Below, one piece after another: positions 190-62,199 of a stretch of DNA of 64,000 bases. The stretch comes from Octopus bimaculoides (Eukaryota): assembly GCF_001194135.2 (NCBI RefSeq), contig NC_068990.1:88712286-88776285 (forward strand). Reading direction: 5' to 3'. The position numbers were made by a program, and so were the translations under genes. Position 1 is the first letter of the stretch. The number at the start of each line of letters is the position of its first letter. Under the pieces are notes generated by a model. That model had not been told where the DNA came from, ran no database searches, and saw only the letters and a program-made list of their open reading frames with translations.

Positions 190-423
190 CTGATGATACA
201 AAAATTAAGCTTCATAAAGTTAGCATACCTGAGCAGGATGTTTTAAGACAACTTAAGAATGTGAACTTAGAGAAGTGTAATGAAGCTTGCCTTCAACATT
301 CAGAATGTAATTCATATGAGTACAATAAGAAAGAAAAGGTCTGTGATTTGAGTAATGTGACTCATTTGACTGATAAACTTAAACCCAGTGATGGAAATAG
401 GGATGTTTACATCATTGATCCAG
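190..423 (+). CDS. Exon PAN-A copy 1 (PAN/Apple-like domain)
   Basis: ttccag|CT...CCAG|gtcag, 234 nt; ADDTKIKLHKVSIPEQDVLRQLKNVNLEKCNEACLQHSECNSYEYNKKEKVCDLS...DVYIIDP; PAN pattern C-x3-C-x5-C-x-S-Y-x-Y-x6-C-x-L. Confidence 0.9.
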
Positions 424-1569
424 GTCAGCAGAATATTTCCATTTTATTTTTATATGCATGTTTGTATATCTCTCTATATATATGCATATGAGTGTGTCAC
501 ATATATATATTGGAAAGCATTAGCAATGATAAATCATATTACAGTACTTCAGACTTATGGGTGCTGTGCATAAAATATATTGTGCTTTTTGTGTGTGAGT
601 GACAGCAGAGTACTTGAGAAGAACCATTCATTGCAGCAAAAATGATGTTCTAAAAGCATTTCATTTATTCTTGTGCATGCCAGGCCCTGCCCCTAAACTA
701 ATGCTGCTTCATCAAGCATTCCCCAAATCTCATTACACTAACCCCACCTTAACACCCATCCCTCCATCACTTCTCTATTTGTAGCACTAATTGGCACCTG
801 TAATGACTTGAGAGCAGAGTTCGCATATATCATTTCCCCCATCCATTCTTTGTGCTACCAGGTTCCTCCTTCCCTTCCCCCATCCCCTACTGGTACCACT
901 TCCATCCTTCATTCTTGTTATCTTCCCTTTCCACACTATTTTCATTGGTCACTTCCTGTCTGTCACCTCACTTCTCTCTCCCTCTTCTCTGCCAAACTCC
1001 ATCATAATACTTCACATATCTGCTATCAGCCAACCATAAGTACCTCAGCATCTCTTTCTCCACTACTCCTACACTTTGCCCTTCTCCCATCTACCTTCTG
1101 ACATCTTCTTAAACCACATCTATCTTTCTCATCTTATACCCTCTTCATATGGACATTTACCACCAACTGCATATTCACCTTTGTTCATCACTTACTACAT
1201 TCACTTCTAGCCTCATCTGTTTCCATCATTTGCTCTCCCCTCACTCACTTATAAAATTACTTTCCCCCTTCTTACTCCTCACTGATCCTCTGTACATATC
1301 CTCTCTTATACTCATCTTCTTGTAAATTGTGAGGTTTAACCTGGCGACCATTCACTACTATCTTTATTTTCTTCCTAGCTACACTCATCTACCCTTACAT
1401 AATGTGAAAATGTTAGCCATGCACCTATCATATATATATGTGTGTGTGTGTGTGTGTGTGTGTGTGTGTAGAAGTAAAAAAAGTTACACACGAGTTGATA
1501 TGTATAAAGAAAATAAGACAAGGTAGAAAATGCTAAAATAATTTTATCATAAAATGGAACAGCTATTGG

Positions 1570-1960
1570 GAGGTAGCTGCAGGTATACCAGAGTGCCAGG
1601 GACTCTTTCCCATCCCAGTTACGAAAAAATGGACATTTTAATGTAGTGTGAAAGAAAGAAAGTGGTGAATCTAGTCAAGTTAACGGTTCCTCATGAAGAT
1701 AACATGGACATTGCTCAGGTTCAAAAGATTGACCACTATGTAAACCTCCTTGAGGACTGTAAGGATGCAGGCTGGAAAGTGGAACATTTTTCAATCGAAG
1801 TCAGATGTAGAGGATTTGTTGGTTACAGTGTGATGCGACTACTACTATTGTTTGGCCTAACTCATTGTCTAGAAGAATATTGAGCTTTATTTGATAACCA
1901 GTTGATCTAGCAAGCAGAGCCTTGTATCAGTGAGGCGGGATGGTGCGCAATGATGCTGTC
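1570..1960 (+). mobile_element. Degenerate C-terminal restriction-like endonuclease (RLE) fragment of an R2-superfamily (HERO/NeSL-like) non-LTR retrotransposon
   Basis: DILM*CERKKVVNLVKLTVPHEDNM...KIDHYVNLLEDCKDAGWKVEHFSIEVRCRGFVG resembles the (RP)DI...ELTVP...K..KY...EVGCRGF RLE signature; stop/frameshift present. Confidence 0.65.
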
Positions 1961-2465
1961 GGGAGGTAGGCACCAAAACAGTATGCATTCTCTCCTGATG
2001 ACCCCTTACTCTTGCTGGCTTCCGGTATGTGCAGCTTTTGACTGGTAGCACTTGCATGTGCAAGTTGTTTGCAAAACAACATTCATATGCTACAAATAAT
2101 CATGATATCTGTGACAATAAAAATCTGCAAGACCTTAAGATTTAAAGGATAATGTTTAGTAGAAGATGCTTTCCTTCATAACCTTGCTACCATGTAGGTG
2201 GCTGGTCAAAATTTAACCTCAAATTAAAAAGAGAAAGAGAAGAAAATGCATACATACATACATACCTACCTACATACATACATACATACATGTACATACA
2301 TACATTTTTATATGTGTACTTGCATCTATGTATATATTTGCGTTCAGATGTCTTCTGATTATTTCACTCGATACCTTTCATTGTAAGATTGTCATTATCT
2401 CCTTATTCTCACCCTCTTCCAAACATGCTCTCACCATTGACACCAGTTTCTCCTTTCAATTTCAG

Positions 2466-2636
2466 TTTACTCCAAAATTAACTGTGAACCACCAAAAGAC
2501 ATTGTTGGTGCTAACAAGTCCTACAATACCACCACTTATGAAGCTGAAGTGACCTACACTTGTCCAGAAGGAGATGAATTAAAATCAGTCTGTAAAAAGG
2601 ATAGTAAATGGTCTCCAGTAAATTCTACATGTAAAG
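2466..2636 (+). CDS. Exon Sushi-S1, unit 1
   Basis: ttcag|TT...AAAG|gtaat, 171 nt; YSKINCEPPKDIVGANKSYNTTTYEAEVTYTCPEGDELKSVCKKDSKWSPVNSTCK (4 Cys + Trp of CCP fold); missed by ORF track. Confidence 0.9.
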
Positions 2637-2974
2637 GTAATGTAAATAACTTCCATTTTTTTGTCACTGTCAGGGTAATCTTACTTTATTTTTGTGCAAA
2701 ATGTCTTTGCCAGAGGAAGTCTAGCTGACTCTCTGACAATTTACACAGTGTTTGTGGCTAATGGGAGAGACAAAGGAAGTTGTTCTCAGACCAGATACTT
2801 CCCCAGATGTTTGCATCAGGGTGGTCATCATTAATTCTATCCAAGGGCAAAGTATTAAATTGGGTGATAGGTTAAGTCTCCCAACAAAAAAGTGGAAATG
2901 TGGTAGTCTGTTCCCTCCAGCAGACATCCATAGTTTCCATTTACCAGACTTCATCCTTTGTTCTGAAGCAAATT

Positions 2975-3435
2975 TTTAACAGCTCCATTTCCTCTCTAGT
3001 CTTTGCACATCCTCTGTATTCATGGCCTTTGTCCCACTGCCATGTATTCTTGGTGATGATACACAAGTAACACACAATTTGCCTTTCACTCATAGTGAGA
3101 GACCTTTTAGTGCCACCAGAGGTTACAGCATTCTGAACTTTCTCCATCTTGTTATTCTAACAATTATCCATTTTTAACATCCTCTTCCTCTGCTAGTTAG
3201 GTCACCAAGGTAACAGACACTATTTACAACCTCTAGGGAACCTCCTGGGCATTTCAGAAAATCCAGTTCCTGTGTGTTTATTGTTCCTACACATCTATCA
3301 CATACAAAGACTTCTTTCTTTGTTAACCTTCCTGTGATTCCAGTGCACCTCTGATGTGTCCATATGTTGCACTGGATACACCATATGGAATTCCTACCAA
3401 CACCTTTCCTATATATTGAGCAGAGCACACACATA
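2975..3435 (-). mobile_element. RTE-clade LINE fragment (RT C-terminal region with Cys-rich insert), upstream of S2 unit 1
   Basis: RKGVGRNSIWCIQCNIWTHQRCTGITGRL...FVCDRC...LEVVNSVCYLGDL. Confidence 0.75.
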
Positions 3436-3478
3436 ATATTCATGCAACATTGGTATCAATTTCTATTCTTAATTTCAG

Positions 3479-60734: not shown

Positions 60735-61075
60735 AGGGAGATCTTAGATGGTAGGTTCATCAATTGGCCCAAGGTGTCCTCCTGCATCAGGAGGATCACA
60801 TCACTTTCACCTTTTTATTTTTGCAATAAACAAAGTGGTATCAAAAAGTTCAAAGGTTATTGTTTTAACACTGCCATTGAGATCAAGAGTGGATCACAGA
60901 AGGTCCTCGAATTGCTTACAGAAAATAACTTCCAGGCCCGATTCCAGGAATGCTGGGGCCTGTGTATTGTTATGCAAGGTGACTGTTTCAAAGGAGATAA
61001 TGTTAAAACTTGAGTAAATAAGTTATTTTTTATTAAACATAGCTAATCCAGCAACTGTTTCATACCTCCTCATAT
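60735..61075 (+). mobile_element. Mariner C-terminal fragment
   Basis: KFKGYCFNTAIEIKSG...FQARFQECWGLCIVMQGDCFKGD. Confidence 0.65.
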
Positions 61076-61189
61076 ACCATCTATACTTCTACATCATTCC
61101 ATTCTATGTAAATGCCCACATTTTAAGTCCATCATTAAATTGTCCCCACATCTCTCATTCTTGAGGCAAATAAAAGAAATCACAATCGT

Positions 61190-61280
61190 CATTGTCATCA
61201 TCATCATCATCATCATCATCATCATTATTATTATTATTATTATTATTATTATTATTATTATTATTATTACTATCATCATT
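61190..61280. repeat. (CAT)n-(TAT)n trinucleotide microsatellite
   Basis: Direct read; similar (ATT)n at 52612-52661 and 51240-51300. Confidence 0.9.
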
Positions 61281-61525
61281 GATTTGACTCAAGTTTGGTC
61301 TTATTCTTAGCATTACTGATATGGGCAGCGAGTACTACCTGTAACTTTCGGTATCCACTAGCTTTCAGTAGTCTTTCAAGTTCAGGAACATTTTAATACA
61401 ACCTCGTATAACAAATACACCACATGCATTGTAATGTTTAGTGTGTGTGTGTGTGTGTGTGTGTGCATCTGTTTCGAGTATGGATATAAAATCTACTCCT
61501 TGTTTTCTCTTTCTTTTCCTTCCAG

Positions 61526-61759
61526 CAACAGACAGGAAAATTATACTTACTAAAGTTAGCATACCTAGGCAGGATGTTTTAAGACAGCTTAAGAATGTGA
61601 ACTTAAAGAAGTGCAATGAAGCTTGCCATCAACAACCAGACTGTAATTCTTATGAGTACAATGAGAAAGAAAAGGCTTGTAATTTGAGTGATGTGACTCA
61701 TTTGACTGATAAACTTAAACCCAATGATAAAAATAGGGATACTTACATCATTGATACAG
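61526..61759 (+). CDS. Exon PAN-A copy 3
   Basis: 234 nt; TDRKIILTKVSIPRQDVLRQLKNVNLKKCNEACHQQPDCNSYEYNEKEKACNLS...DTYIIDT. Confidence 0.9.
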
Positions 61760-61962
61760 GTCAGTAGAGTATTTCATTATATTTTTATATACATGTCTGT
61801 GTATCTCTATATATATGAGTGTGTCACATATATATATTGGAAAGTGTAAGGAAACAATTTAATCAGCCCTCTTCTACCTCAAAGATTTTGGCTTTTTTCT
61901 ATATCAGAAATTTATATTATTAATGTTGTATTTCATTGGTCTAAATTTTATTTTAAATATAG

Positions 61963-62199
61963 AGGTTGACAATTTTGTGAAAGTAAATGATGCCTTTCTT
62001 GATGTACCTGAGAAAAAATTGTGGAAAAAGAAAAACGTAACAGCAGAAGATTGTAAAGAAAAATGTTTGTCTGACAGAAATTGTTTATCATTTGAAATAA
62101 CAAAAAAAAGTAAAAAATGTTACTTATCAAATCAACTTCCATATCCCTTCATGAAATTACTGCCAACCAAAGATAGAGATTACTACCAACGAATAAAAT
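61963..62199 (+). CDS. Exon PAN-F (divergent B/E-type)
   Basis: atatag|AG...AAAT|gtaat, 237 nt; VDNFVKVNDAFLDVPEKKLWKKKNVTAEDCKEKCLSDRNCLSFEITKKSKKCYLSNQLPYPFMKLLPTKDRDYYQRIK. Confidence 0.85.

Follow-up and report, generated by a model that had tools for sequence, protein, structure and literature searches.

Single-domain PAN and Sushi exons in an Octopus bimaculoides array: probably an internal stretch of one very large gene for a secreted modular protein

A stretch of 64,000 nucleotides of the Octopus bimaculoides genome (NCBI RefSeq assembly GCF_001194135.2, contig NC_068990.1, positions 88,712,286 to 88,776,285 of the forward strand; hereafter, the window) is crossed by a long run of small exons encoding PAN and Sushi domains, which raises the question of whether these exons belong to one gene and what sort of protein they would encode. 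An earlier reading of the letters alone (the original prediction) took the run for the middle section of a single huge protein, secreted or at the surface. The analysis described here suggests that the window is probably an internal stretch of one very large gene (LOC106869390 continuing into LOC106869402), with a secreted multivalent scaffold as its product. The gene is known in databases as fragmented uncharacterized models, and its architecture, [Sushi-PAN-PAN]n-GON, is undescribed.

The modules were located by tblastn with three representative exon peptides as queries (one PAN type I, one PAN type II, and one Sushi). The search returned 37 modules, 21 PAN-like and 16 Sushi-like, every one on the + strand and each forming an exon of its own. 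From position 190 to 62199 their order is A-[S1 S2 B1 C S3 B2 D S4]x2-E-A-[S1 S2 B1 C S3 B2 D S4]x2-gap-A-F, where S1 to S4 are Sushi types and the remaining letters PAN types. The counts, order, ends, and length estimates of the original prediction were all reproduced by tblastn and splicing. Each exon starts, after an AG acceptor, with two bases that finish a codon and stops one base into a codon ahead of a GT donor, so all exons of the window are phase 1-1. The clean AG/GT ends that had been claimed hold for 35 of the 37 exons; exons 5 and 9 lose their 3' ends and donors in assembly gaps. Sushi exons are 171 nt long (one copy, exon 20, has 168 nt) and PAN exons 231 to 240 nt, with paralogous copies equal in length. 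Hidden Markov models (HMMs) built from the PAN and Sushi alignments and run over the six frames of the window revealed no additional module and no decayed pseudo-exon, the extra matches all scoring below 11 bits. As the original prediction had noted, neither the HMM scan of the window nor the inspected gene models contained a start, stop, signal-peptide, transmembrane, or other exon type between modules.

At the Pfam gathering cut-offs of 21.4 bits for PAN_1 (PF00024) and 20.7 bits for Sushi (PF00084), the six PAN types scanned directly (A, B1, C, D, E, and F; B2 was not scanned itself) matched PAN_1 at 32.9 to 41.5 bits. Among the Sushi types, S1, S2, and S3 matched at 30.0, 22.8, and 24.6 bits, and S4, at 18.3 bits, fell 2.4 short. 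In the alignments, the four-cysteine PAN core (C29, C33, C39, and C51) is invariant in 21 of 21 PAN exons. Likewise, none of the 15 complete Sushi exons, those of type S4 among them, has lost C6, C32, C42, C55, or W48, so that each shows the four-cysteine spacing (1-3, 2-4) and conserved tryptophan of a Sushi domain in about 57 to 60 residues. An AlphaFold2 (AF2) model of the PAN domain of exon 1 (type A) had a predicted local distance difference test score (pLDDT) of 85, with a helix at residues 26 to 35 packed on a five-stranded sheet. The top Foldseek matches of this model were the HGF N domain, the plasminogen PAN domain, and leech antiplatelet protein (PDB 1nk1, 4dur, and 1i8n), at probability 1.00 and TMq 0.72 to 0.80; the E-values are modest (about 1e-3) because the PAN domain is small. 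These three share the fold and the four-cysteine core with the octopus modules and differ in being single PAN modules in unrelated architectures at 14 to 19% identity.

An Apple domain in the strict sense was considered and rejected, since it requires a third disulfide and six cysteines, and each octopus module has only four. The apples of factor XI and kallikrein also rank beneath the HGF and plasminogen PAN modules in Foldseek. The modules are PAN domains of the HGF/plasminogen N-domain type rather than true Apple domains; the earlier label "PAN/Apple" therefore stands in its first half, confirmed by Pfam and by fold, and of the checks that had been proposed, Pfam bore out PAN_1 and Sushi and AlphaFold the PAN fold. 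Tandem PAN-superfamily modules also occur in Toxoplasma MIC4, Sarcocystis SML-2, and the four-Apple discs of factor XI and prekallikrein, which match the octopus model weakly in structure (TMq 0.60 to 0.66). These proteins differ by the third disulfide of a true Apple, which joins the N and C termini, by having neither Sushi nor GON, and by their 2 to 6 copies against dozens here.

Spliced together, the 37 exons encode 2,562 amino acids (aa) with zero stops, a count that includes 22 X from the two gap-truncated exons. From the base composition of the window, the chance probability of 2,543 stop-free codons is about 1e-77. The visible product is thus open, in line with the original prediction, which had likewise seen neither stops nor frameshifts. 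Across 51 paralogous exon pairs, the pooled ratio of nonsynonymous to synonymous rates (dN/dS) is 0.55, with S4 lowest at 0.34 and A and S1 highest at about 0.9; as the pairs are not independent, these values and the indel and mismatch figures are descriptive. Gap events number about 1 per kb in exons against 34 to 50 per kb in the 150-nt intron flanks, which makes them about 40 times rarer in exons, and all exon lengths remain in frame. Paralogues mismatch at 7.7% in exons versus 13 to 15% in the flanks, and the 148 expected cysteine positions visible in the window are intact (148/148). The exons might instead be an untranscribed or decaying relic of exon duplications, and a dN/dS of 0.55 is not strong constraint. 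Such a pseudogene appears extremely improbable beside 7.6 kb of exon without stops or frameshifts between flanks so rich in indels, the intact cysteines, the retention of all splice sites, and the conservation of intact arrays in three species. The moderate dN/dS rather suggests that constraint acts chiefly on the fold and the reading frame and less on the surface: conservation covers frame, splice sites, and cysteines, and many surface residues are free to vary.

The window has a G+C content of 36.8% and contains 12 runs of undetermined bases (N). The gaps named below were assessed by aligning their flanks to paralogous units, which is an argument from paralogy and not from sequence. For gap 58916-59682, one flank matches 24800-25715 (offset 33205) and the other 26483-26630 (offset 33200). 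These near-equal offsets indicate that the missing 767 nt correspond to 25716-26482, a segment containing exon E (26184-26420). The 38th exon of the original prediction, a second PAN II of type E hidden in this gap, is thus a well-supported candidate by paralogy. Gap 27027-27792 corresponds to an exon-free stretch (60724-61475), gaps 38058-38129 and 40487-40934 to just 9 to 31 nt in the paralogues, and gap 12217-12675 to paralogous segments of 417 to 427 nt that hold only the remainder of the S4 exon and intron. Gaps 34025-34447 and 49373-49571 occupy the same paralogous spot in the B1-to-C introns of units 3 and 4, where a long simple repeat probably resisted short-read assembly. The left edge of gap 44217-44481 is reached by no paralogous match, and the D-to-S4 introns of the other three units are exon-free. 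An exact 50-bp duplicate (44718-44767 and 44778-44827) brackets the 10-N gap 44768-44777, which is probably the unrecognised overlap of two contigs. None of the gaps in the window is predicted to break the frame.

The units are mosaic. The S4 exon of unit 1 is nearest that of unit 4, and the C exons of units 1, 3, and 4 are similar and that of unit 2 divergent, a pattern that either gene conversion or unequal crossing-over would be expected to leave. Between exons 3 and 11, all 171 nt and the 100 nt upstream of each agree (3379-3649 versus 15834-16104), and the sequences diverge further out, which looks like recent gene conversion or assembly cross-talk between units 1 and 2. This identity, together with twelve N gaps in 64 kb, the exact duplicate around the gap at 44768, and two paralogous introns gapped at the same spot, would also fit a reading in which part of the copy number is an assembly artefact, made of haplotype copies or mis-scaffolded repeats, with fewer real units. 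We hold this for rather improbable, as the paralogous units differ by 4 to 18% at synonymous sites, carry distinct intron insertions, and measure 12.4, 15.4, and 16.0 kb; moreover, a fifth near-copy of the unit lies downstream (locus L001, below), and the long-read assemblies of O. vulgaris and O. sinensis have like arrays without gaps. Paralogous units of this one array, compared between the window and other O. bimaculoides loci, are 85 to 90% identical. The possibility raised by this low figure, that the window comes from another species than those loci, was rejected because XP_014770598.1 (below) matches the window exons exactly. Duplication has proceeded in blocks: a triplet of Sushi, PAN type II (basic), and PAN type I, at times with an extra Sushi; then the 8-exon unit; and then a super-unit of about 28 to 34 kb.

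Next, gene models were used to follow the array beyond the window. Locus L001 is the O. bimaculoides CM046610.1 region with LOC106869402 and its 10-kb upstream flank, and L002 is another array locus on CM046610.1. An exhaustive HMMER search with the LOC106869402 protein recovered XP_014770598.1 (LOC106869390, 1,730 aa, old RefSeq, "uncharacterized protein"). This model carries as exact strings window exons 6 to 8, part of exon 9, and exons 10 to 18, 36, and 37 (15 exons), followed by four exons (A, S1, S2, and B1) found neither in the window nor in L001. It then contains exactly the L001 exons C, S3, B2, D, and S4, which lie intact yet unannotated in the 10 kb upstream of LOC106869402. The E exon of L001 is cut by a 794-N gap precisely at the "start" (MGKKLL) of the LOC106869402 model. 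LOC106869402 (1,067 aa) consists of just PAN and Sushi modules ahead of a C-terminal GON domain (114.8 bits), then a stop, and the gene next to it is CACHD1-like. At the other end, model fragment P0011 splices upstream D-Sushi-PAN II exons onto window exon 1, so that three or more exons upstream lead the frame into the window, and it runs on in these models as far as the stop after GON.

The window is located a few kb upstream of CM046610.1:88,784,334, and the order leaving it is A-S1-S2-B1-C-S3-B2-D-S4-E-A-S-S-B-C-S-B-D-S-B-p, then the C-terminal GON domain. Adding about 2,642 aa in the window (gap exon included), about 1,700 aa downstream, and at least 200 aa upstream, the window would encode the central part of a protein about 4,500 aa long or longer. 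XP_014770598.1, P0011, and the downstream GON and stop agree with the "middle" of the original prediction; its alternative of a surface protein gained no support, as no transmembrane segment or anchor was found and the C terminus is GON. The search of the flanks for end exons that it had recommended located the terminal GON exon and stop downstream. No 5' end or signal peptide of the giant gene was found in a model search with the furthest upstream exons, and no model covers the exons from the upstream flank of L002.

XP_014770598.1 is without window exons 1 to 5 and 19 to 35. In it, exon 18 (E) is followed at once by exon 36 (A) (26420 to 61526), with 17 in-frame exons passed over, and this junction could be a real isoform or could be due to the second E exon hidden in gap 58916-59682. 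Accordingly, the symmetric exons might form a cassette pool in which in-frame skipping yields many isoforms, like a recognition repertoire: all 37 are phase 1-1, so any subset stays in frame, and dN/dS nears 1 in the A and S1 modules. For a comparison with Dscam-type arrays, in which transcripts reveal regulated, mutually exclusive or cassette use of tandem paralogous exons, the relevant observations are this phase symmetry and the one exon-skipping model. We do not favor the cassette pool and give it a low probability, as phase 1-1 symmetry is general for shuffled extracellular modules and does not imply regulated skipping. The join is most simply explained by the hidden second E, since reads or alignments over a junction of that exon with exon 36 would be placeable only on exon 18.

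On CM046610.1, the same-strand PAN/Sushi array extends from 88.248 to 88.816 Mb, at least 570 kb. Models of 1,133, 709, 1,865, 761, 4,083, and 1,067 aa divide it, LOC128248837, LOC128248838, and LOC128248840 being among the neighbours. Annotation passes over further PAN/Sushi exons, intact and in phase, that are located between models or upstream of them (L001, 1-10000; L002, 1-10000 and 36000-44000), and the current annotation of the locus is fragmentary. LOC106869390, LOC106869402, and their neighbours belong to the same locus as the window; their models are fragments starting inside domains, one of them at an assembly gap, and none is characterised.

In an initial homology search, all relatives came from O. 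bimaculoides, O. vulgaris, and O. sinensis and were 45 to 61% identical. The same triplet pattern is present in intact arrays of O. vulgaris and O. sinensis, in gap-free long-read assemblies. At the seven loci examined, every PAN/Sushi exon is on the + strand and nearly all are full length without stops, in the order Sushi - PAN II - PAN I with an occasional extra Sushi; about 113 intact exons were counted in roughly 229 kb of readable sequence. O. sinensis LOC118764742 (XP_036361601.1, 2,643 aa) and O. vulgaris CAI9728790.1 (4,470 aa) have the same Sushi-PAN II-PAN I repeat at 45 to 64% identity, in arrays of hundreds of kb; they differ from the window gene by species and by longer introns (3 to 8 kb). 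In cross-species blastn of the window against the O. vulgaris and O. sinensis loci, 63% of the non-exon bases also match, via shared repeats, so that this comparison does not set exons apart from introns in conservation. The architecture is thus already deposited in three Octopus species, where the predicted proteins reach 4,470 aa and are called "uncharacterized" or, wrongly, "SVEP1-like." The earlier statement that this is not a named gene is right only in so far as the databases offer no names but these. No well-characterised ortholog of the same architecture turned up among the models, and searches by domain, gene, or accession names found no literature on the giant gene or its family.

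The annotations also allow a reading in which several distinct PAN/Sushi genes of medium size stand in tandem along the array and the window spans more than one of them. NCBI and ENA annotations in the three species draw models of 380 to 4,470 aa; on O. vulgaris OX597823.1 at 24.01 to 24.19 Mb (L005/L006), successive one-strand models have 4,470, 861, 857, and 3,597 aa. The 4,470-aa model (CAI9728790.1) finishes with a short non-domain last exon holding a stop (L006, 5459-5503), which could be a real alternative 3' end, and small complete members with their own signal peptide exist, such as GON-Abd-1 (465 aa). However, the inspected models all lack a signal peptide and begin at an internal methionine, which falls within a domain or in read-through of an intron. 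Two O. vulgaris models lie just 542 bp apart, one of them ending in intron read-through in gap-free sequence, and one O. bimaculoides model break falls exactly at an assembly gap. Moreover, intact in-phase exons are left unannotated between models, the window holds no start, stop, signal-peptide, or other exon type, and the old RefSeq model crosses it. Separate genes are unlikely in our judgement, and a single large gene remains the preferred reading.

Several points weigh against that reading. Annotations in three species divide the array into many models, the only model spanning the window skips exons 19 to 35, and the O. vulgaris 4,470-aa model closes in its short stop exon. The 5' end and signal peptide were not found. 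The copy number in the window depends on a gap-rich short-read assembly, from which true continuity across the gaps cannot be proven, and the splicing of all 38 exons into one mRNA is a prediction from gene models. The dN/dS is just moderately below 1, and near 1 in the A and S1 modules. Finally, the putative salivary-gland link of the small relatives discussed below comes from their names.

As for known families, the window product and its homologues matched PAN, Sushi, and GON only. The identity suggested by the "SVEP1-like" label was rejected, as vWA, EGF, pentraxin, and HYR domains are missing from the window product and homologues. ADAMTS9/GON-1 was rejected as well: there are no reprolysin metalloprotease, disintegrin-like, or thrombospondin type-1 domains, and GON is preceded by PAN and Sushi only. 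Closer counterparts are small mollusc proteins. GON-Abd-1 of Abdopus aculeatus (R4G2C1) consists of a signal peptide, PAN II, PAN I, Sushi, and GON, and its alignment with the tail of LOC106869402 spans 499 columns, of which about one in five is a gap, with 44% identity (E = 2e-135). GON-Sep-2 of Sepia pharaonis (R4FJA6, 291 aa) has a signal peptide, Sushi, and GON. Both have the module types and the C-terminal order of the octopus giant gene, and differ in being small and complete, with a signal peptide of their own and one copy per module where the window gene has dozens. In Haliotis, proteins of about 300 aa labelled "ADAMTS9-like" contain a signal peptide, PAN, and GON, and a protein of Argonauta contains a signal peptide and four PAN modules. 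Within this informal group of mollusc secreted PAN/Sushi-GON proteins, the defining GON after PAN/Sushi is found in the downstream continuation in L001, outside the window.

GON was also seen to close the C terminus of many secreted proteins outside the ADAMTS family in molluscs and amphioxus (P0172, P0155, P0055, P0018, and P0030). The N-terminal parts of such proteins are PAN, Sushi, or parts labelled "fibrillin-3-like" or "SVEP1-like" by the source, and several are misnamed "ADAMTS9-like." The Haliotis PAN-GON proteins, the "fibrillin-3-like" and uncharacterized proteins of Gigantopelta, and an uncharacterized protein of Argopecten resemble the octopus gene in their secreted modular N-terminal part and GON cap; they differ by other or far fewer N-terminal modules, and are not metalloproteases despite the name. 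Sushi-rich proteins match the octopus product via their Sushi modules only, at about 30% identity. Very long secreted proteins with many small disulfide-rich modules, each on a phase-symmetric exon, include Drosophila Dumpy, hemicentin, SCO-spondin, SVEP1, and CSMD. They are built from other module types, and an alternation of PAN and Sushi or a terminal GON is not known from any of them.

The HGF N domain binds heparin and leech antiplatelet protein binds collagen, and tandem PAN-superfamily modules serve multivalent protein or galactose binding in apicomplexan adhesins, factor XI, and prekallikrein. The visible product has 14.9% lysine, 5.7% cysteine, an isoelectric point (pI) of 8.8, and 36 N-glycosylation sequons; its PAN II modules carry a strongly basic net charge (+2 to +12) and its D-type PAN I modules an acidic one (-4 or -5). 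An extracellular nature is suggested by the exclusive presence of PAN, Sushi, and GON, by the sequons and cysteine content, and by the signal peptides on the small relatives. Under the preferred reading of a single gene, this gene would have been assembled from single-domain phase 1-1 exons, with triplets duplicated in blocks and the frame ending in a C-terminal GON. Its product would be a secreted, disulfide-rich, N-glycosylated, lysine-rich glycoprotein acting as a long multivalent binding scaffold, a role proposed because of the heparin, collagen, and galactose binding of the HGF N domain, the leech PAN protein, and the apicomplexan PAN lectins, respectively. Each PAN module may form a small knob whose ligand would be a protein or a (poly)anionic glycan, Sushi modules may act as spacers between the knobs, and the high copy number could provide avidity. 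The GON domain might be a C-terminal secretion or assembly module.

Candidate roles could lie in saliva, matrix, mucus, egg coat, or immune recognition; the lectin and adhesive functions suggested by the original prediction likewise stay hypothetical. The names GON-Abd-1 and GON-Sep-2 are presumably in the style of coleoid posterior venom-gland cDNAs (Ruder et al. 2013, J Mol Evol 76:192, cited in PMC4619613), a lead and not a result. Since these small relatives seem to be named as posterior salivary (venom) gland cDNAs, saliva or the extracellular matrix of secretory epithelia would be the first place to look. The cephalopod venom papers that were checked mention neither GON nor PAN.

A bolder reading would take the whole O. 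bimaculoides array, from before 88.248 to 88.816 Mb, as one transcription unit encoding a secreted protein of at least 20,000 aa, whose exons could be skipped in combination to yield a set of binding isoforms, and which would have been derived in the octopus lineage by runaway triplet duplication from a salivary-type PAN-PAN-Sushi-GON gene. We regard this as doubtful; its figure of about 280 exons is an extrapolation from the roughly 113 counted. If the whole array were one unit, the protein would be among the largest animal proteins known.

The gene would clearly illustrate how a giant gene specific to one lineage is formed by repeated block duplication of single-domain exons, caught while the units are still 83 to 96% identical and gene-conversion tracts are visible. 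It also shows how, in three octopus genomes, gap-rich assemblies and automatic annotation break such genes into "uncharacterized" or misnamed fragments. The small secreted relatives across molluscs offer a way to approach the GON domain, which is poorly understood, in proteins other than ADAMTS proteases. If the product is a component of saliva, mucus, sucker, egg coat, or immunity, it would become a candidate for a biomaterial or recognition molecule specific to cephalopods. No major paradigm is changed, giant modular extracellular proteins being a known kind of protein. The exons of the window are collected in Table 1.

Table 1. Exons of the window and the gap predicted to hide a further one (all exons phase 1-1 where both ends are visible)
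Feature	Position	Strand	Evidence
Exon 1, PAN type I (A)	190..423	+	AG/GT, phase 1-1; PAN_1 41.5 bits; exact match to C-terminal 77 aa of model fragment P0011; AF2 pLDDT 85, PAN fold
Exon 2, Sushi S1	2466..2636	+	AG/GT, phase 1-1; Sushi 30 bits
Exon 3, Sushi S2	3479..3649	+	AG/GT, phase 1-1; 171/171 nt same as exon 11
Exon 4, PAN type II (B1)	4803..5042	+	AG/GT, phase 1-1; PAN_1 39.5 bits
Exon 5, PAN type I (C)	6102..6326	+	About 5 nt and donor missing at 10-N gap (6327); 96.5% identity to exon 23 up to gap
Exon 6, Sushi S3	6969..7139	+	AG/GT, phase 1-1; exact in XP_014770598.1
Exon 7, PAN type II (B2)	7322..7561	+	AG/GT, phase 1-1; exact in XP_014770598.1
Exon 8, PAN type I (D)	8819..9052	+	AG/GT, phase 1-1; exact in XP_014770598.1
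Exon 9, Sushi S4	12100..12216	+	54 nt and donor missing in gap 12217-12675; part present in XP_014770598.1
Exon 10, Sushi S1	14868..15038	+	AG/GT, phase 1-1; exact in XP_014770598.1
Exon 11, Sushi S2	15934..16104	+	AG/GT, phase 1-1; in XP_014770598.1
Exon 12, PAN II (B1)	17103..17342	+	AG/GT, phase 1-1; in XP_014770598.1
Exon 13, PAN I (C, divergent copy)	19022..19252	+	AG/GT, phase 1-1; Pfam; in XP_014770598.1
Exon 14, Sushi S3	20216..20386	+	AG/GT, phase 1-1; in XP_014770598.1
Exon 15, PAN II (B2)	21879..22118	+	AG/GT, phase 1-1; in XP_014770598.1
Exon 16, PAN I (D)	23635..23868	+	AG/GT, phase 1-1; in XP_014770598.1
Exon 17, Sushi S4	24857..25027	+	AG/GT, phase 1-1; Sushi 18.3 bits (below cut-off), 4 Cys and Trp kept; in XP_014770598.1
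Exon 18, PAN II (E)	26184..26420	+	AG/GT, phase 1-1; Pfam; in XP_014770598.1
Exon 19, PAN I (A)	27842..28075	+	AG/GT, phase 1-1
Exon 20, Sushi S1, one codon shorter	30272..30439	+	AG/GT, phase 1-1; Cys/Trp alignment
Exon 21, Sushi S2	31336..31506	+	AG/GT, phase 1-1
Exon 22, PAN II (B1)	33487..33726	+	AG/GT, phase 1-1
Exon 23, PAN I (C)	37003..37233	+	AG/GT, phase 1-1
Exon 24, Sushi S3	37871..38041	+	AG/GT, phase 1-1; donor ahead of gap 38058
Exon 25, PAN II (B2)	40195..40434	+	AG/GT, phase 1-1; donor ahead of gap 40487
Exon 26, PAN I (D)	42204..42437	+	AG/GT, phase 1-1
Exon 27, Sushi S4	44531..44701	+	AG/GT, phase 1-1; complete, flanked by gaps 44217-44481 and 44768-44777
Exon 28, Sushi S1	46291..46461	+	AG/GT, phase 1-1
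Exon 29, Sushi S2	48024..48194	+	AG/GT, phase 1-1
Exon 30, PAN II (B1)	48795..49034	+	AG/GT, phase 1-1
Exon 31, PAN I (C)	51778..52008	+	AG/GT, phase 1-1
Exon 32, Sushi S3	52878..53048	+	AG/GT, phase 1-1
Exon 33, PAN II (B2)	53656..53895	+	AG/GT, phase 1-1
Exon 34, PAN I (D)	55374..55607	+	AG/GT, phase 1-1
Exon 35, Sushi S4	58062..58232	+	AG/GT, phase 1-1
Assembly gap, predicted hidden second PAN II (E) exon of about 237 nt	58916..59682	+	Collinear paralogous flanks
Exon 36, PAN I (A)	61526..61759	+	AG/GT, phase 1-1; exact in XP_014770598.1
Exon 37, PAN II (F)	61963..62199	+	AG/GT, phase 1-1; 203-nt intron before; Pfam; in XP_014770598.1, four further exons beyond the window come next

Introns of the window are mostly 0.2 to 3.3 kb long. 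Very short ones are possible after E/F-type or before A-type PAN exons, as seen between exons 36 and 37 (203 nt, 61760-61962) and in the E-to-A intron of L001 (10190-10507, about 300 nt). The minus strand and the sequence between exons have coding content in the form of short transposable element fragments only, consistent with the decayed intronic elements noted originally, and the longest non-exon open reading frame of the window (172 aa) has a CCHC-like motif and no Pfam match. Transposable element debris lies at 22929-23351, 41528-41734, 56632-57492, and 63051-63566; mariner-type transposase fragments match Pfam Transposase_1 at 26.1 and 19.5 bits, and a LINE-type endonuclease fragment is broken by a stop. 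A (TG)n microsatellite of 32 to 96 bp stands just 5' of the C-type PAN exons 13, 23, and 31 (18935-18966, 36902-36947, and 51625-51720) and was evidently duplicated along with the exons, its length differing among the copies. Another (TG)n microsatellite, of 24 bp, lies at 61442-61465, 5' of A exon 36.

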